A stretch of DNA of 64,000 nucleotides from the NCBI GenBank assembly GCA_965644495.1, contig CBFFSA010000006.1, positions 248,001 through 312,000 on the forward strand, in the 5' to 3' direction. The notes below the pieces were generated by a model. That model was not told the DNA's origin. It did not search any database and worked only from the letters and a program-made list of their open reading frames with translations. Shown here in pieces: positions 43,966 through 52,438 of this stretch. The first letter of the stretch is position 1. Each line of letters opens with the position of its first letter. The position numbers and the translations under genes were made by a program. The DNA is from Perkinsela sp. CCAP 1560/9. Its lineage: Eukaryota; Protista; Euglenozoa: Kinetoplastea.

Positions 43966-44170
43966 GTAAAGTTACCTTACTTTTTCGCGCTAAAAAAATT
44001 CGACATAGAGAAACGCAGAAACCGAATTCAATGTTACTTTAAAACTGCATGGGTCATGCGTGAAACACAATATCGCATAAAGAATATGAGATACATGTTC
44101 GTCGCGATCCACGATGGGCCTCATTTTCTTTCCCAAGGAATTGCGGCTCTAGAAAATAATATTTCACACG
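43966..44170 (+). pseudogene. Degenerate copy of the LTV1 3' end and downstream spacer
   Basis: GTTACCTTACTTT..AATTCAATGTTACT..ATGAGATAC..CCCAAGGAAT aligns with 42602-42810. Confidence 0.75.
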
Positions 44171-44411
44171 ATTTGGCGGTTAAATCACCTATCTCTACAG
44201 TAAGTTCTCTACCGTACAGTGTACATGAGTTTTGTCAGTCAGTAATGATGAGCGAACACTACATATTGAATTAATAAAACTATTAAACTTTAATAATGTT
44301 ATTTTTCAGTAATGATACAGTGTACTATTCAGGAGGAGTAACTTTGAATTTTCATCCTTTCCTTTCAACACTGTGTCTTATATTGAGATATCCGAATAAC
44401 CACATTTTAGC

Positions 44412-45029
44412 ATGTTAAATTTAGTGTTCCGTTCTACGTTGGAATTTCCTACAAAAGACGTAAGCTACACTTCTACTCGTTTAGGACGCGTGCGTGCTGC
44501 ATTACCACAGGAATATAAACTTTTGAAGTTCATCGAAAACGTATCTAACCGACATACATCGTGGAAGGCTGATACCCCGGCTTGCGAGTGGGATGGAGTA
44601 ACCTGTAATGAAGAAGGCAAAGTTGTGAAAATTCGTTGGCAAAATCGCCTTCTAGAAGGCTCACTTGAATGGAAGAACCTACCCGATACACTTCTTGAAT
44701 TGAGCATGCATTCAAACAATCTCTTTGGTAGTATTGTGTTAGAAGATTTACCACCCCACCTCGAGTACCTCAGTCTAGGCACCAATCACTTCACCGGAGG
44801 TGTTACTCTTCAAGCTATGCCAAAGACAATGAAGAAACTTCTAATCGGTAACAATGAGCTTTCCGGTTCCATTCGCTTTGGTGATTTGCCGGATAATTTA
44901 TGCTTTTTGTATCTAGCGGATAATGCCGATCTTTCGGGCACTCTGATGCCTTCAGAATTGTCTCCAACACTTGAGGCTTCAGTTTATACTGACCGTACCA
45001 AAATAATAACAATGCTTAGTACAATGTGA
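44412..45029 (+). CDS. Short LRR protein (RLGRV subfamily)
   Basis: Close paralog. Confidence 0.9.
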   Translation: MLNLVFRSTLEFPTKDVSYTSTRLGRVRAALPQEYKLLKFIENVSNRHTSWKADTPACEWDGVTCNEEGKVVKIRWQNRLLEGSLEWKNLPDTLLELSMHSNNLFGSIVLEDLPPHLEYLSLGTNHFTGGVTLQAMPKTMKKLLIGNNELSGSIRFGDLPDNLCFLYLADNADLSGTLMPSELSPTLEASVYTDRTKIITMLSTM

Positions 45030-45405
45030 ATGGCACAAACAATTGTGATAAGCTTCGATTAAAACTTTCTGATTACTCATTTGAGCTGTTTATGTTTGAA
45101 CTGCACTGGGTAGAATGGCCGATTTTTCAACCCATAGCGCTATGGATTCTTTGTTTATACAAAGTATTATACCGTCGTAAATTTATGGAAAACTGTGTGC
45201 GAGTATGAAGAATTGAGAACAGAAGTATCGTAAGGCTGGACTTTGAAATAAAGTCTTCGTTACTGGTTTTTCATTTCCCTTGCATTTTTTCATAACCATG
45301 CTACAAGGGTGCAGTAATGTTTACATGCTGAAAATCATATTTTGATGAACCACATGATTGCTTCGATGATATATCAAGTATTGTGGCATTGGTGAAAATG
45401 CGTCG

Positions 45406-46701
45406 ATGTTCCATCGCTACTTTGCTTTGTTTGCTGTCCTCTGGTCAATAGCGTCGTTCATTCACGTAACACATTCGCGATCTGTCTGTATCACAGAAAA
45501 AAGGAGCACCGTAGGTGCATATTTCTCTGTTTGCGAAAGCGGTTCCATTATTCGATCACTTTCAAGAGAGTCCAAGACTTTGTGCGTTACTGTCATCCGA
45601 AATCTACCTTTATCCACTTTTAACATAACCTTACCTTTTTTAAACGTTCATGGTCAGAAGTCTCTACTGTACATCTGCTATACTCGTTCCGGCGGCGCAC
45701 ACTTTCCGTCGAACATTGAAATAAGTGCCTTTCCATTCGGATATGACCGAAATCACAAATTGCTCATCGAGAAGCAAACTTTTGAATCCAATGCTGGCGG
45801 ACTAGAAGAAAAGACGCTGTATATTCCAACACGAGCCTTGAAGCATGTGTATCGTTCTAAAAGTCGAATTCTTTATTCGGCCTTTACCATTTTTCGCTGT
45901 AAATCAAAGTGCCGCAATGTTTTGGTTGGTAATTCTTCAAGGGACTTCAGAATGCAACGAAATGCACATACCTCTATGCCATACATGTATATGAAAAAAG
46001 TGCATCGGAATAATTGCTGGATAGCACGGACATCTCGAATACGCGCACCACGTGAAGTGCTTCTGCACTCTTCAGCCAAGTTTCGAGAGGAGTTTCTGAA
46101 TCGGAGAACCAAGGCGTTTGCAATAGAGACACGTGAAAAGTCAGCACCGGGTGCTATGACATCAACGCAGTCATATTTAAGCGATAGATTGCGTCTGCCC
46201 CAGAAGTCCAGTTACTATCCTACAAATCGCCCGATGTCAAAAAAGGAAAGCTTGATGATTTGCACTTATCCTATTTATCGAGCACAATTGTTGCGTGTCG
46301 CTAGAGGTAAACCTGTGAGGTCCAGTAAACTTTTTCTGAATGCACGCATCTCACCCTGCAAACTAGAAGTATTACAGAAATTGAAGAGTTTCACGCAATG
46401 TCATCGTCATGCATCATCGGAAGACTCTACATTGAGAACTCATAACCGTTCGACACGCTATGCTACGATATACCCTTGCACTTTTTTTCAGGGAAACAGA
46501 GAAAAGTTTGTTTCAAAACACGCACAGGACCCGCATTTTCAAAGTGGCGTTAAATCTAAGTCTTATCCTGATGGGAGATGTCCACATATCATATTTACAC
46601 TTCTCAGTTTGTTATTACTTCTAATTTTAATATCTTCGGTGAAATATGAACCATGCCCAAGAGAGCTCGACGGGCTCATTATTCTGCGATCCAAGTTATG
46701 A
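45406..46701 (+). CDS. Orphan basic protein with signal peptide and C-terminal TM segment
   Basis: Hydrophobic N-terminus; IIFTLLSLLLLLILISSV near the end. Confidence 0.6.
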   Translation: MFHRYFALFAVLWSIASFIHVTHSRSVCITEKRSTVGAYFSVCESGSIIRSLSRESKTLCVTVIRNLPLSTFNITLPFLNVHGQKSLLYICYTRSGGAHFPSNIEISAFPFGYDRNHKLLIEKQTFESNAGGLEEKTLYIPTRALKHVYRSKSRILYSAFTIFRCKSKCRNVLVGNSSRDFRMQRNAHTSMPYMYMKKVHRNNCWIARTSRIRAPREVLLHSSAKFREEFLNRRTKAFAIETREKSAPGAMTSTQSYLSDRLRLPQKSSYYPTNRPMSKKESLMICTYPIYRAQLLRVARGKPVRSSKLFLNARISPCKLEVLQKLKSFTQCHRHASSEDSTLRTHNRSTRYATIYPCTFFQGNREKFVSKHAQDPHFQSGVKSKSYPDGRCPHIIFTLLSLLLLLILISSVKYEPCPRELDGLIILRSKL

Positions 46702-47318
46702 ATGTTGTATGACTGCTGTTCGACAGAGCCACTTAAATTATTTTTACGTATTAAATATCAAAAACCTCTTTTATATCGCGATATTTTTATTTTTAATTTC
46801 TGTGTGCTATAGTGATTACTACTACCTTGCCTACATTACCTGCTCGCATTTAATTTCTTGCTATTTGCATCCGTATTGCCTCACGTATTTTCACCATCCG
46901 TGTTATCAGTTTTAGACTAGCTTTCTACTATTTTTTCACGGATTTTGCCAGTCCCTTTGAAAGCACGTTTGTCCGGGTTTTGGGCAAAGTTACCCTTCGT
47001 TTTATAAGTTACCCTACGTTGTATAAGTTACCATAAATTGTATATGTTAAATTTTGAATTTACGCCCTTTATGTGACATTGATGGAAAATGCAATTTCAG
47101 TGATATGATATCGAAATTGGTAATGTAAACTATTCTTTGCTTGACTTTTATAAGCACGTTCGACAGGGTATAAAATTGTCAGTTTTTGTCGAAAACACTT
47201 TAGAAAATGGGGGCCACACTTACGTTCCGCTCGTATATTCGAAACCAGACCCAAATACTTATAGCCAAGCCCTCAATATACCTTCCCAGAGCTTTTTCTT
47301 TCGGAGAACTACATTTCA

Positions 47319-47432
47319 GTATAAGGGTTGACCCCCTCAAAGTGGGCTAAAACAGGCAAAAATGATGATTTTTGCCCCGAAACGCCCATTTTTGGGCAAA
47401 AAATGCCATTTTCAGGGGGGTACCCCTTATAC
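47319..47432. mobile_element. Nested ~114-bp inverted-repeat element
   Basis: GTATAAGGGTTGACCCCCTCAAAGTGG ... CCATTTTCAGGGGGGTACCCCTTATAC. Confidence 0.5.
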
Positions 47433-47792
47433 ATTAAATCCTCGTTTGTGAAAAAAGTGGTACAGGAAGAGTCTTTGAGGCCTAGTCTCGCTCGTACATG
47501 GGACTTTGAGTCAAATAAGAACTTGGCTTAAAAAGCGTGCAACTTACGAAAAGTGTTTTTTCCAGGCACTTTCAGGGGGTGTGCAAGCCATGAGAAAGTA
47601 ACCATAAATTGCATAAGTTACCCTAAATTGCATAGGATGAGGCCACAAAACGATGACCTCTATAGCGGGTCACTCCAACACTCATGACACATAAATGCGA
47701 GTGGAACACTGACAATACTGAGCATCACGTCATCTTCCCTCTTCCGCATGACTGTGAATCGTATGCTGTGTGACTGTTCACTTGCCACCACT

Positions 47793-48255
47793 CGCACATT
47801 GATAATGTTTAGTTAAGGAACCCAATAAATTCACCTTTGCTCCCGGTGAGGCCCCGGAGTTGCGTGAAGGCCTCCATACCCCACAACTACCACCTTCCCC
47901 CCCTATTTAGCGGGAGTCGCGCGAGCGACCCCTGATAAACGGGGGGAAGGTGGTAATTGTTTTGGGGGAAATGAGAGGCCGAACGCACGGAGGGGACGGC
48001 CGGGTCAATGAACCCAGGCCTTGTTTTTGTGCTACAAATGTGGTATGCATTATTAATGTGCTATATGCATTATCAATGTGCGGGCGCCGTCTAGAGTCAA
48101 GGCCCAACTGTGAGCGTAGCCCACTTCTAGAAGCAAAAGCCCCCGTTTGCGAACAAGGCCCAACTTCGAGCGTAGCCCTGGGACAGAATTATATTTTTCA
48201 GCGCCCCCGCGCGCTGGAGCGCGCGGGGGCGCGCACTGAAAACCTATGTCTGCCC
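47793..48255. ncRNA. Candidate structured RNA/ssDNA core of the foldback element
   Basis: ~290-nt bulged rod capped by a GCGA loop, 25-bp direct repeat pair, 15-bp GC hairpin. Confidence 0.4.
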
Positions 48256-48577
48256 TTTCCGCAGGATTGTGTATTGTTTTACTATGCGGTGTGACCATGC
48301 AATTTTAGGTAACTTATACAATTTGTGGTAACTGATACAATCTATGGTTACTTTCCAAAACCCTATTTTCGCATACAATTTGTGGAAACTTATACAATTT
48401 ATGGTAACTTATACAATTTATGGTAAATTTCCCCCGGGTTTTGACGGATTTTGATGACATAGCGCGGTACGTATACGTGTGCACAAAATTTCTCAAATTT
48501 ATATTATTCCAACGATCCTTCACCTACGACATGAGATTCATATTTCTTTGATTCCTATTTCACATCTTTGCACAACC

Positions 48578-50365
48578 ATGGAAGAACTCAATGAAATCAA
48601 AGAGCTATTCGCCGGGGTGTGTCCCCGTGTCCAGTGGAGCCTTATGGAACCCACAACTCGTATCCCGCCCATGATGGTTCCCCCTATTTCCATTAGTGAG
48701 AAATATGCCACCTACACGCGAAATTCCCTGGATGACGAATATCTCCGCGCCCTGCCGAAACGCGTGTTTAACAAGATTGATGTTACGGCAATGCTGGACA
48801 CGGACAAGATGGAGCAAAACTACACGTATTTCCCGGAGGGACAACATCCACCCCCTTCTCTTCGAGATATTCTTCACCGACATTGGGATGACGCGCCGGT
48901 CCCCGAGGTGTTCTTGTGGGAGCCCATCTACACGGAGCTCAAAGGGGAGGATAATGAGGGACTCGCAGGGGTGGTGACATCGAATGGAAGTCCACGAAAT
49001 GTTTCCTATACCACCTCGACGCGGCCCATAAGTGCCGCGCAGGATTTGACGGGGCTGGAGGATAGGGCGAAGTGGATAGACAGTGGTGAGGAGTGGGTTC
49101 GAGGCGTTAATCGTACGTTTCAGAGAGCAGCCGCAGTGGATAGAGAGTGGCGCTCCTATTTGACGAATATTCGTGAAGACCGGTTGGGTATAACACAGGT
49201 CTCCAGTTGCGCGGGAAATTCTAGTGAAGAAATGGACAATGCAATCGAGAGTCTCGTACACGACCTGAATAACAGCATGACCTCACAAAAGGAAATCAAT
49301 CCTTCGGAAATGAAAAGTGGAGCTGTGGAAAATGTCTCTGGTGAAACCCCATCGGATATCTTACTGGAACCATCTCATCACACAGCTCTACGTCTAGCAC
49401 GGCGTATGAAATCGGAAATTGACCAATTTGGACGTCCATCTGAAGCATTTTCTCGTGATCTAACGCTGTATTACCTTCAGTGCTGTATAGGCCTCCCTAA
49501 GAGTGTACACATTTGGCTGCCCTTCATAAATCCAGACACACTTCCCTTAATTAATGAGAGGAGCCCAAATACAGGCGCAATAACACGGTTTCATGTGCTT
49601 TATAAAACGCTTATGAAGTTGAATGACCTACATTCCGAATGGTATACGAAGCAATGTAATTTAGCACCTCTCGGTGATTTCGTCAATGAAACTCCGTCTG
49701 TAGACTCACAGCCTACGCAGCCTATGTCCCTGACACAGACTCAGACAACATCTACATCCGCTACTACTACCTCCACACCACAGACTTTGAATTCTCAAGC
49801 AACAGATGCAAACATTGTGAGCGCGACCCCCTTCAAAGATTTCCGCTATCTCAGGCATCCCTCTGGGTCGCGATCCATCAAGCCTCTCTCCGTGCTTCCC
49901 ATCCATGTCCTCCCAGAAGGGGAGCACGATGTTGTGCTGCGGGTAGCTAACCCGGAACTCCTCCCCCTGCGTCGTATGCTACAGGGCTCCGCGTTCGCCG
50001 CAATCGAACGGGCTGCGGTTGGAGGTGGCACGTTGTTAGAAATGTTCACTTCCCAAACAGAAGAGTCGGAAGAACCAATTTCAAACGAAGCGGCAGAGTT
50101 CGAGCAAAGTGCTATTTCGGATTCAGTCACAGGCGCGGCGACCCCAGGGATGATAGAGACGCACACCGTACGGTCAATGCGGTTGTTTGAGTCACACACG
50201 GTGGTGAAACCGATGCCGTTACACGAGCGGGTCCGCTACATGGCAATGGCGCCGAGTCCGGAGGGTAAATCCATGCTAGCGTGGAACGTAGGGTCCGCCG
50301 CAGAGGTATCGCATTTTACAAACCAGGAGGCGCGCGATATGGTTCGCACGCTAGTTTTAGAATAG
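48578..50365 (+). CDS. Putative divergent Paf1-like protein
   Basis: Colinear Paf1-like motifs KYATYTRNSLD, VNRTFQRA, RHPS..IKPLSVLPI. Confidence 0.5.
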   Translation: MEELNEIKELFAGVCPRVQWSLMEPTTRIPPMMVPPISISEKYATYTRNSLDDEYLRALPKRVFNKIDVTAMLDTDKMEQNYTYFPEGQHPPPSLRDILHRHWDDAPVPEVFLWEPIYTELKGEDNEGLAGVVTSNGSPRNVSYTTSTRPISAAQDLTGLEDRAKWIDSGEEWVRGVNRTFQRAAAVDREWRSYLTNIREDRLGITQVSSCAGNSSEEMDNAIESLVHDLNNSMTSQKEINPSEMKSGAVENVSGETPSDILLEPSHHTALRLARRMKSEIDQFGRPSEAFSRDLTLYYLQCCIGLPKSVHIWLPFINPDTLPLINERSPNTGAITRFHVLYKTLMKLNDLHSEWYTKQCNLAPLGDFVNETPSVDSQPTQPMSLTQTQTTSTSATTTSTPQTLNSQATDANIVSATPFKDFRYLRHPSGSRSIKPLSVLPIHVLPEGEHDVVLRVANPELLPLRRMLQGSAFAAIERAAVGGGTLLEMFTSQTEESEEPISNEAAEFEQSAISDSVTGAATPGMIETHTVRSMRLFESHTVVKPMPLHERVRYMAMAPSPEGKSMLAWNVGSAAEVSHFTNQEARDMVRTLVLE

Positions 50366-50595
50366 TGAGAAGGATGGTCACGAAGGCAGCCAACGTTCTC
50401 TGCATGGACTGTATGGAGTTCTCTTGTTACCACAGCTCTTTTCTCCTTGCTGGAAAACTATGCCAAACACCAAAAATACTGTAATATCGTTTGATGTGAG
50501 TATTATTCACTTTAAGTCCCTACTGAGCTTTGAAAACCAGAAACTCTCTTTAAAAAACACAAAACACCCTTTGCGTTATTTCAAATTTTCTTCTC

Positions 50596-51687
50596 ATGTC
50601 AACGGACAAGACCCCCTCCTACCCCTCCCCAACCCCCCCATCTCTCCCCTCCCCCCCGTCCCCTACGCCCCCTCCTCCTCACCCCACCCCCCTCCACGAC
50701 CTCACCGACCCACTCCACCACCTCCCCTCCCTCGATGCCCCCCCTCCCCACCCCCCACGCACCACCACCACGGGATCCCCCGTAATCCCCCCCTCCCCCC
50801 CTCCCCCCCTCCCCCAGCTCCCGTACCTCACCTCCCCCTCCCCCCTCCCCGCCGCCACCACCGGCGGCTCCCTCCTCCCCCTCACCTTCTCCGCCCCCCT
50901 GGACCCCGGCCTCATGCCCTACTGCCTCCGCCTCGGCTCCCCCACCGGGCGCCGCCTCCTCCCCTGCTCCGTGCTCAACCCCTCCACGCTGCTCTTCGTG
51001 GCCCCCGCCCACCCCCTCGGGTGTGTCAGCCTCACCGTGCTCTGCGGCCCCGGCCCCGCGGTCCGGCCCTACCCCGGAGGCCGCAGTCTGTGGCTGGAGT
51101 ACGGTGCCCCGGTCCCGGGGGACCCGGAGCGCCGGAACGAGGCCGTGCTGCGGGAGCTGCAGCAGGTGGTGAGGGTGCTGACGACGCAGAGTGGTGGGGG
51201 TGGGGGTGGGGGTACGACTACGGTGGAGACAAGAGAGCCGCCCTCGAGGTTAACCTGTCATGAGGTGAATTTCATCAACTCTTTGACGTATATTGACCGT
51301 CCCGCGGCGTCGGTTTCGCAGATCTCGGAGATGGGGGAGAGTAAGGGGGAGGAGTGCGGTGGGGATGATCTGGCGAGTCTGGAGGAGGAGATGGGGGAAG
51401 GGGGGGAGGTTAGTCGGGAGCCGTGGGCTCGAGGAAGCTCACCGGTTTCGTCGGGGAGAACGCCGAATGGGGGTTCTGCGCCGTTGTCGTTGACAAAGGA
51501 AATGTTAGAGCAGCTCACTAAAGCGCAGAATATTTTCTTGCAACCACTGATGCGGACACCGTACATGAGTACACAAACACATGACGTTCCTTCGGGGGAT
51601 GTGGACGACAATTCCAGTCGGTACACGTACACCAATAGCGTGGTGCCTCCGAGTTCGCCGCGTGACATACTTTCTTCAACAATGTAA
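50596..51687 (+). CDS. IPT/TIG-domain protein with Pro-rich N-terminus
   Basis: SP..A.TTGG..L....VLNPSTLLFVAPAHPLGCVSLTV. Confidence 0.7.
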   Translation: MSTDKTPSYPSPTPPSLPSPPSPTPPPPHPTPLHDLTDPLHHLPSLDAPPPHPPRTTTTGSPVIPPSPPPPLPQLPYLTSPSPLPAATTGGSLLPLTFSAPLDPGLMPYCLRLGSPTGRRLLPCSVLNPSTLLFVAPAHPLGCVSLTVLCGPGPAVRPYPGGRSLWLEYGAPVPGDPERRNEAVLRELQQVVRVLTTQSGGGGGGGTTTVETREPPSRLTCHEVNFINSLTYIDRPAASVSQISEMGESKGEECGGDDLASLEEEMGEGGEVSREPWARGSSPVSSGRTPNGGSAPLSLTKEMLEQLTKAQNIFLQPLMRTPYMSTQTHDVPSGDVDDNSSRYTYTNSVVPPSSPRDILSSTM

Positions 51688-51961
51688 AAAAGAAAATTGC
51701 TTGCTAGTTTGTTCTGTATATTTTAGGGGAATGTCATTGGGAGTGATTTGTCTTCTAAGAATCCGCAAGCATGCATACTGCTTGCCGATGAATTTAGTAA
51801 AGAGTCGTACACATTTCCATTCTAGAGCCCGAATAACTAAACCGTTAGTTACATAACCGTTACATAAACCGCATTCTTGGAACGTAAGTGTGGCTTTTTT
51901 TGTAAATGTTCTCGTCGTCAATGCGCTTGCCTTATTTCTTTCTGAATGTCGTTCTTTCATC

Positions 51962-52438
51962 ATGAATTTTAGCACTCGTCTCCTTAAAGAGTGTCGCGAG
52001 GCTTCACTCTCCACCGATACGGATATTGTGCTCCGTTGTACCAGCAATGACATGTTACAGTGGGAAGCGAAACTCCGGGGTCCTACGGACACCCCTTATG
52101 CTGGAGGTCAATTTCACCTTGTGCTTCAACTTCCTAAAGACTATCCCATGGCTCCACCCCTTGTCCGGTTTCGCACGCTCATGTTTCACCCAAACATACA
52201 CCCCATCCACGGGGAGGTCTGCTTAGATATTTTGAAATCTGACTGGACCCCTGTGTGGACACTGCGTAGTGTATGTCGGGCAACACAAACATTACTGGCC
52301 CACCCGGATCCGGAGAGTCCGTTGAACTGTGATGCAGGCAACGCACTGCGAGCAGGGGATGAGGTTGCTTTTCATAGTTTAGCAAGGTATTACACGCTCA
52401 CCTACGCTACCGAGAAAGGGCAAAAAGAAGGGAATTGA
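51962..52438 (+). CDS. PEX4: Ubiquitin-conjugating E2, PEX4-like
   Basis: FHPNIH..GEVCLDILK; WTLRSVCRA..HPDPESPLNCDAGNALRAGD tail matches PEX4/UBC21 type. Confidence 0.75.
   Translation: MNFSTRLLKECREASLSTDTDIVLRCTSNDMLQWEAKLRGPTDTPYAGGQFHLVLQLPKDYPMAPPLVRFRTLMFHPNIHPIHGEVCLDILKSDWTPVWTLRSVCRATQTLLAHPDPESPLNCDAGNALRAGDEVAFHSLARYYTLTYATEKGQKEGN

Follow-up and report, generated by a model that had tools for sequence, protein, structure and literature searches.

The nature of the folded stretch at 47793-48255

Within a 64,000-nucleotide (nt) stretch of DNA from the kinetoplastid Perkinsela sp. CCAP 1560/9 (contig CBFFSA010000006.1, positions 248,001 to 312,000; this whole stretch is called the window, and its positions are counted from its first letter), a gap of 1.8 kb separates the open reading frames (ORFs) 45406-46701 and 48479-50365. 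The gap is occupied by a segment of about 290 nt that pairs with itself into a bulged rod and by a second, GC-rich arm. What kind of object is this rod? An initial annotation, made from the letters alone, had seen in it the structured cargo of a foldback element and had proposed a mobile non-coding RNA or an origin working as single-stranded DNA. We show that the rod is DNA palindromy of transposon origin and not a free-standing RNA gene, and we document its architecture, its coding partner, its derivation by deletion, the mobility of a sister copy and the absence of covariation. Our explanation as a whole, in which we have good confidence, is that the rod represents a nested miniature IS30-type transposon derived by deletion, whose palindromic centre (the core) would act as a portable cis module.

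All pairings proposed for the rod were recovered. The outer stem joins 47793-47807 to 48068-48082 with 15 of 15 positions paired, the inner stem joins 47883-47902 to 47941-47960 over 20 nt with 95% of positions paired, and the apical hairpin GTCGC-GCGA-GCGAC is located at 47916-47929. As RNA, the segment 47793-48082 folds at -144.1 kcal/mol on the plus strand (z -10.1, with none of 200 shuffled sequences folding as well) and at -138.9 kcal/mol on the minus strand (z -9.8); as DNA, 47787-48088 folds at -75.5 kcal/mol (z -8.2). These pairings are real and far above chance expectation. The stretch also lacks genes, as had been stated, and holds only mechanical ORFs of 66-114 amino acids (aa), none of them with a Pfam match. 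The reported GNRA cap fared differently: the hairpin is present, but its GNRA loop is not conserved among 35 aligned copies, in which it mostly reads GCGA, with GCCA in three (one of which adjoins an intact transposase in locus L037) and GTGA in two. On the opposite strand, the apical loop reads UCGC.

The rod is a miniature IS30-type transposon

The ends of the rod identify it as a complete, miniature, non-autonomous IS30-type foldback transposon of 302 bp (47787-48088). It starts with ACCACTC-GCACATTG, ends with CAATGTGC-GGGCGCC and is flanked by the triplets GCC and GTC. At the borders of the sister copies L005, L016, and L020 stand the termini CCCACTC... and ...GGGCGCC, and the ends in the window match them; because these shared termini place the true ends seven bases beyond the outer stem, we delimit the element at 47787-48088. 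Its left arm (47793-47807, plus strand) is one partial 20-nt arm unit and forms the 5' half of the outer 15/15 stem, whereas its right arm (48044-48082, minus strand) comprises two inverted 20-nt arm units. The 15-mer of the outer stem is part of the 20-nt terminal arm unit of the family. This unit, GCACATTGATAATGCATA plus two bases, has 249 forward and 219 reverse matches in the genome (468 together), compared to 0 for a control pattern, and a first DNA search of the genome returned 247 matches. Full copies carry 9-25 inverted 20-nt units per arm around a non-coding centre, and the sister copies L005, L016, L020, and L012 measure 1.1-1.3 kb. The earlier view of cargo inside a foldback element is borne out in that the stretch is a discrete and conserved module borne by a foldback transposon.

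One of the sister copies documents mobility. L016 splits a hairpin of which L043, L029, and L150 have unbroken versions, and the triplet AGA stands on both sides of the insertion. IS30 elements generate target duplications of 2-3 bp. The AGA repeat corresponds to a 3-bp target duplication, and therefore arms plus centre moved as one unit.

To find coding partners of the element, we searched for IS30 transposases with the profile NF033563 at a cut-off of 80 bits. The genome contains 96 matches, many with intact frames of 315-362 aa. In L036, L037, and L038, an arm array is followed by a transposase ORF (328-362 aa), the core and an inverted arm array; the ORFs of these three loci score 253 bits and contain HTH and rve domains. 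The suggestion that longer copies might carry a gene was thus correct in that coding copies exist, but what they encode is an IS30-family DDE transposase and not a nuclease, Rep or reverse transcriptase. In its arms, the miniature element is about 82% identical to the autonomous L036, and the ends are related as well. Loss of the gene by deletion can be followed directly in L027, which equals L037 without positions 894-2056, i.e., the gene, with 97% identity on both sides of the deletion. The miniature element retains solely the terminal arm repeats, which give the outer stem, and the core palindrome, which gives the inner stems, and judged by this composition it is the smallest deletion derivative of the L036-type family. 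We propose that it would have been moved in trans by an IS30-type transposase binding to the arm repeats.

The genome also contains compact 1.4-kb IS30 copies, found in L041 and L039, which have simple 31-33-nt inverted ends and no core. The copy at L041:1235-2623 spans 1.39 kb, has inverted ends of 33 nt and carries an ORF of 315 aa; the same family is present in L042, L043, L044, L046, and L047. Across at least six of the loci retrieved, this ORF varies neither in length nor in position, and its L041 and L043 versions are 100% identical. This type of element looks bacterial in its layout, yet it is found on large contigs of the genome. Contigs of the European Nucleotide Archive (ENA) that were reached by protein search added no divergence and appear to come from the same or a very close organism. 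One of them (L151, ENA assembly ERZ24900291), which likewise seems to stem from this organism or one very close to it, has at 1832-2902 a gene for a 356-aa protein whose DDE_Tnp_4 domain is of the PIF/Harbinger kind. The gene lies upstream of an IS30-type transposase, at a distance of about 1.1 kb.

Two further observations concern the surroundings of the foldback copies. The hairpin that served as the insertion target in L016 is a second module of about 110 nt (37-41-nt arms, 29-nt loop) that recurs near IS30-type elements, at L043:2941-3043, L029:1297-1407, and L150:5797-5899. It has the motif AACTACCACC / GGTGGTAGTT in common with the long stem of the core; TCTGCCACCA, the 10-nt repeat in the arms of the L150 element, is similar to this motif. 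In a repeat island on contig C3, short repeats of the CCCCTGGACCCC type lie on both sides of foldback elements (L005:858-885, 2240-2286, and 2567-2608), and the elements of this island appear to have entered the same repeated context more than once.

The miniature element is nested in a probable Merlin-type element

The miniature element itself lies inside a larger, non-coding foldback element of 1.45 kb (46983-48433) with 19-nt arm repeats. The left 19-nt array covers 46987-47049 on the plus strand, with a second short array at 47596-47634, and the inverted right array covers 48297-48434 on the minus strand. The 10-bp direct repeat CCGGGTTTTG flanks this outer element on the plus strand at 46973-46982 and 48434-48443. 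A sister copy at C6:230458-233439 is 91% identical, already contains the miniature element and has the 8-bp sequence CGGGATTT on both sides. The flanking repeats point to an 8-10-bp duplication with a target preference, consistent with a Merlin-type element. Merlin-type elements create target duplications of 8-9 bp. In addition, a relative with 73% DNA identity to the outer element adjoins a 341-aa ORF (L062) that has 117 relatives in the genome. A search for the MULE transposase PF10551 gave 0 matches in the genome. From its flanks and this relative, the outer element is probably of the Merlin type and not of the Mutator type.

A further hairpin of the outer element spans 47319-47432 of the window, with 27-nt arms that match at 81% and a nested 24-nt pair. 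Its sequence recurs within the 19-nt-arm element of L017 (approximately 1930-2060); therefore, Merlin-type elements own a shared hairpin module.

The core is shared by transposon families and has a fixed position

The part of the rod that stands out in comparisons is the core, an imperfect palindrome of about 165-170 nt (47840-48000 in the window) that is common to several transposon families. A covariance model built from 35 core copies detected 63 full-length cores in the genome above the threshold of 100 bits, about half of which entered the analysis by their coordinates alone. On the plus strand the consensus reaches a folding energy of -121.7 kcal/mol, and on the minus strand one of -113.1 kcal/mol. 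Cores occur singly or as two to four tandem units of 225-290 bp. Their mean pairwise identity is 95.6%, whereas the 100-nt flanks are about 54% identical in global alignment and cannot be aligned for most pairs; left and right flank types are combined around the cores in a shuffled fashion.

The conservation of the core is not matched by the genes beside it. The transposases of L036 and L037 are only 57% identical as proteins and 66% as DNA, and the arm repeats of the two loci differ, whereas, a 25-nt apical deletion in L036 apart, their cores are about 97% identical. With the gene set aside, BLAST aligns little beyond the core; by eye, a motif of 23 nt, together with a small hairpin upstream of it, is also common to both. 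Moreover, the core haplotypes GAAATG and AATATG are both found in both arm families, which points to exchange or gene conversion and not to co-divergence. We suppose that the core would serve as a block of homology at which internal regions recombine.

In all 13 cases in which a full-length core lies within 3 kb of a transposase ORF, it is located 3' of the ORF, with the minus strand of the window in the sense of the gene. Eight of the 13 stand beside IS30-type ORFs (C10:694069, C48:948, C12:81968, C50:26630, C1:1722610, C19:157815, C10:710637, and C13:122745) and five beside Merlin-type ORFs (C19:147775, C11:481795, C19:108610, C4:751454, and C11:137956). Six weak or partial cores fit the same pattern of position and orientation. 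Three weak cores break it, namely C6:235272 and, when judged relative to the adjoining Merlin-type ORFs, C70:23169 and C7:500404; C70:23169 fits the pattern relative to an IS30-type ORF on its other side. The weak covariance-model matches that we inspected are truncated halves of the core and not divergent homologues. Weak matches beside other IS30 subfamilies, known by their coordinates, are C5:713319, C70:23169, C20:87825, and C2:1440993.

How the core came to be present in several families can be traced in part. In L008 and L017, a lone IS30-type arm unit bounds the core segment, and a nested miniature element as the origin of the core in Merlin-type elements is a possibility. For the L037 family, we considered the same origin, i.e., a nested element of the window's family, and rejected it since no window-type arm units flank the L037 core. 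Outside this genome, the exact two-arm core pattern had no match in metagenome contigs, and nhmmer found no core with 80 environmental relatives of the IS30 transposase (43-49% identity). On contig C11, the regions 467034-470216 (L015) and 479070-482252 (L014), 12 kb apart, have identical match patterns, each comprising three cores along with arrays of 19-nt repeats and a fragment of a Merlin-type gene; this is a recent segmental duplication of a transposon cluster.

The copies give no sign of a selected RNA or single-strand DNA structure

Bulged helices and a capped loop had been taken as marks of single-strand structure under selection. The copies do not support this. In a test of 65 pairs in 34 distinct core copies against 500 shuffles, 96.4% of the cells form standard pairs, but the covariation score is 0.023 compared to 0.022 in shuffles, 117 of the 500 shuffles reach it, and a single cell is changed on both sides. 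The 130 paired columns hold 50 distinct substitutions, or 0.385 per column, and the 32 unpaired columns hold 11, or 0.344 per column, i.e., stems and loops change at the same rate. Forty-nine of the 50 substitutions in paired columns break a Watson-Crick pair, and compensatory double changes number 0 among these 50 distinct stem substitutions. Wobble changes confined to one strand amount to 11 on the plus and 17 on the minus strand. Given the low power of the test, this result is no evidence for a selected fold, which is distinct from evidence against the fold.

One way to read the rod would nevertheless be as the source of a trans-acting structured RNA, either a guide or scaffold like the omega-RNA of TnpB/Fanzor systems or a ribozyme. 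The very stable fold with its conserved bulges and GNRA-like cap would fit such an RNA, as would the sharply bounded conservation of the core, far above that of the adjoining transposase gene, and its fixed orientation relative to that gene. However, the zinc ribbon PF07282 of TnpB/Fanzor has 0 matches in the genome, whereas control genomes respond to the same search, and the partners that we find are DDE transposases, which need no guide. An Rfam scan of 44000-52000 at a permissive threshold returned only mir-1260b, at 22.5 bits against a gathering threshold of 81 and with an E-value of 0.88. Along with the substitution pattern in the stems, the equally good folding of the reverse strand and the variable apical loop, no conserved T-run terminator follows the core, the five-T run at 48026-48030 being specific to the window copy. 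We therefore regard a trans-acting RNA as very improbable.

An even smaller share of our belief goes to a single-strand DNA signal, i.e., a replication origin or a recognition hairpin of an HUH/Rep or rolling-circle element. The segment does form a stable hairpin as DNA, and Helitron-type Rep genes exist in this genome, one of them (C10:713217) about 1.4 kb from a core (C10:711643). Yet only this one of the 17 Helitron Rep matches lies within 3 kb of a core, and Y1 (IS200/IS605-type) transposases have a single match in the assembly, of 145.8 bits, at C83:5698-6060 on a small separate contig that may be bacterial contamination. Inverted arm arrays and DDE transposase genes consistently flank the cores, and the 3-bp duplication at the sister copy is of the cut-and-paste style. 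Core copies adjoin IS30 or Merlin transposase genes and not Rep/HUH genes. On the strength of the Y1 and Helitron searches, we rejected the reading as a single-strand DNA origin.

Possible roles of the core

We thus return to the rod as a transposon derivative with a core that would act as a portable cis module of the elements and not as a trans-acting RNA. In the elements, the core is apparently kept beside the right arm, 3' of the transposase gene and in a single orientation. This fixed position and orientation favours a role tied to the transposase transcript; it also fits a role at the right end of the element. Two accounts appear possible to us, neither more than tentatively and both to a similar degree. 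The core might provide a 3'-side signal for the transposase transcript, in end formation or stability, in a genome that is transcribed one way over long distances, or it might have no role of its own and be a recombination-prone passenger that gene conversion homogenises. A DNA-level aid to transposition, as a cruciform or a host-factor site, seems a less probable role, and what remains of the probability falls to other roles.

A 3'-side signal would be compatible with a C/U-rich tract followed by AG that both strands of the core have near the apical loop, an arrangement which we take to resemble the trans-splice/polyadenylation signal of kinetoplastids. Two details speak against it: in the intact L037 copy, CG replaces the AG that follows the pyrimidine tract in most copies, and the tract would be paired within the hairpin. 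A broader version, which we think rather unlikely, is that the core serves as a portable 3' cassette acquired and kept by at least two IS30-type families, and perhaps by Merlin-type elements, as an adaptation to polycistronic transcription. Such a cassette would direct polyadenylation and downstream trans-splicing in either orientation, or would dose the transposase via small RNAs made from the hairpin.

Small RNAs are also central to a different explanation, in which the rod acts as a silencing trigger. Read-through transcripts of gene-less copies would give long double-stranded RNA that is diced into small RNAs directed against the shared 3' region of transposase transcripts; this would tame the transposons, be it to the benefit of the host or of the elements themselves. 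Several features of the genome are in line with such a scheme. On either strand, the hairpin has considerable length and is nearly perfect, and the same core lies 3' of transposase ORFs in at least two IS30-type families. All 25 ORFs of at least 250 aa in the window are on the plus strand, and their products include a Cid1-type poly(A)/uridylyl transferase, a FAST-kinase-like protein and a Misato-type tubulin-domain protein; with this layout, the window, which belongs to an assembly of 21 Mb in 110 contigs, reads as that of a kinetoplastid-like eukaryote with one-way gene clusters. Lying between genes of a one-strand cluster, the window copy is likely transcribed through. Piwi-domain genes are present as well, with three 973-aa ORFs at C7:656178-681371 and two 926-aa ORFs on C11 and C21, which makes hairpin-derived small RNAs feasible. 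A transcript through the core would fold into a long hairpin, and production of small RNAs as a side effect is plausible. As a full explanation, silencing has less to offer: it is a consequence of the structure and leaves the origin of the core unexplained, it does not account for the constant orientation, as silencing would be set off by a palindrome lying in either direction, and this role alone would not preserve the sequence of the bulges. We consider it unlikely on balance. The three Piwi ORFs on C7, for their part, have identical scores, lie 11-13 kb apart on one strand and look like a recent tandem triplication of an Argonaute-type gene.

The simplest alternative is a decayed inverted duplication without any role, in which the conservation reflects merely the youth of the copies. 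The folding energy is indeed roughly that of a decayed inverted repeat, the arms of the core being 80-84% complementary, and the substitution pattern among the copies looks neutral. The IS30-type transposase genes L037:825-1808 and L038:1429-2412 are 95% identical, and their 37 substitutions are spread evenly over the codon positions (11, 14, and 12), which points to decay without selection. What the youth of the copies cannot explain is the presence of the same 170 nt in families whose transposases are 57% identical and in which nothing else aligns outside the gene. Likewise, the constant placement of the core 3' of the gene, in one orientation in all 13 cases, and its retention in the smallest derivative are left unexplained. 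Overall, we find this alternative doubtful. The same pair of loci differs unevenly along its length, as the 310 nt from the stop codon to the core are nearly identical in L037 and L038, and this uneven divergence suggests gene conversion.

We still favour the nested, miniature IS30-type element with a portable core; the following points weigh against this interpretation. The triplets that flank the miniature element, GCC and GTC, differ at one base, and there is no empty site to compare, as the sole sister copy of the outer element already contains the insertion. The covariation test has low power as the copies are young and about 96% alike (about 4% divergence). A discrete transcript of the core is conceivable. 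The match of the L062 ORF to DDE_Tnp_IS1595 reaches 24.2 bits, below the cut-off of 27 (E 3.7e-5), and NCBIfam gives no match for this ORF. The five cores beside Merlin-type ORFs may all descend from one old nested insertion. Finally, the sharp conservation of the core compared to the transposase genes would not be explained by a pure passenger unless exchange between families is frequent.

The second arm is a unit of a separate satellite

The second arm had been described as following the rod. Its perfect 15-bp stem (48201-48215 with 48218-48232) and the TTTTCAG/CTGAAAA extension are indeed there, together covering 48194-48243; they belong to a separate satellite unit, and apart from the GC stem the region folds only modestly (48085-48300, z -2.1 compared to shuffles). 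The sequence at 48089-48296 (plus strand) is one unit of a satellite or repeat module of 178-217 bp and includes two 25-nt direct repeats (48098-48122 and 48154-48178) as well as the GC palindrome. The unit has 106 matches in the genome, including head-to-tail arrays of about 20 units at C3:120885-124467 and C49:23664-24862, and it also accompanies the core inside other elements (L004 and L029).

Among the satellite copies, the GC palindrome remains perfect, its 2-nt loop alternates from GG to CC, and changes in one arm are mirrored in the other, including a mirrored 1-nt insertion in the window copy. Loop flips and mirrored changes are signs of palindrome turnover at the DNA level, in which one arm templates the other. 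Since the mirrored changes come from this arm-to-arm templating, the seemingly compensatory changes of the satellite are no evidence of selection on an RNA.

Relation to known elements

Bacterial IS30 elements are among the closest counterparts. The transposase family is the same (NF033563, HTH and rve domains), the sister copy has a 3-bp target duplication, and compact 1.4-kb copies with 31-33-nt inverted ends are present in the Perkinsela genome. Unlike bacterial IS30, the family described here resides in a kinetoplastid-like nuclear genome whose gene clusters lie on one strand each. The family's ends have expanded into arrays with as many as 25 repeats of 20 nt, and a 170-nt palindrome lies 3' of the gene. 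A literature search found no published description of a eukaryotic IS30 lineage.

The architecture is similar to that of the FB and Tetris elements of Drosophila, which also have inverted arms of short tandem repeats, mostly non-coding copies and a modular, rearranged structure. FB elements use a MULE-related transposase and make 9-bp duplications. The elements in Perkinsela differ in the transposase superfamily, no MULE domain being detected in the genome, and in the 3-bp duplication of the inner element. We know of no counterpart in FB elements of the conserved internal palindrome. In Tetris of D. virilis, the internal repeat TIR-220 also forms satellite arrays of kilobase size (PMC4079207). 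This is comparable to the satellite arrays of the 178-bp unit and to the core in its 225-290-bp tandems.

[quoted passage not shown] Unlike MITEs, it belongs to a family of tens of copies and not thousands, and its interior is a specific conserved module and not an arbitrary leftover. With the TnpB/Fanzor omega-RNA and the end hairpins of IS200/IS605, the rod shares only that a structured non-coding segment is borne by a transposon near its end; it differs in the absence of a TnpB/Fanzor gene from the genome, the lone Y1 match on an unrelated contig, and the lack of both covariation and strand asymmetry among the core copies. The SIDER elements of Leishmania, which belong to the transposon-derived 3'-UTR elements of trypanosomatids, are derived from retroposons and are not palindromes. 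A purely functional analogy with SIDER elements is conceivable: a repeated sequence of transposon origin would act in the 3' portion of transcripts, in a genome that lacks gene-specific promoters.

The outer element can be compared to Merlin/IS1595 with regard to the DDE_Tnp_IS1595 match beside its relative, which lies below the curated cut-off, and to the 8-10-bp flanking duplication. Merlin is the DNA transposon reported in Bodo saltans and Perkinsela (PMC8101967). In that paper, a term search found no long 19-nt repeat arms ('foldback', 0 occurrences).

The object in the window is thus an ordinary gene-less miniature transposon nested in another, and the case for a new class of RNA is removed. 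What is unusual is its family. A bacterial-type IS30 transposase operates in a eukaryotic nuclear genome with ends that have grown into minisatellite arms, and a sharply bounded palindrome behind the gene outlasts the divergence of the transposase. If the core is a 3' expression signal or an aid to transposition, it would illustrate the adaptation of cut-and-paste elements to genomes that lack gene-specific promoters. If the core is a passenger, we would have a clean example of a palindrome that spreads between transposon families by recombination and seeds tandem arrays.

Other features of the window

Downstream of the foldback elements, a C-rich low-complexity run with periods of 7, 8, and 14 nt extends from 50644 to 50850. 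It lies within overlapping mechanical ORFs downstream of a 628-aa ORF.

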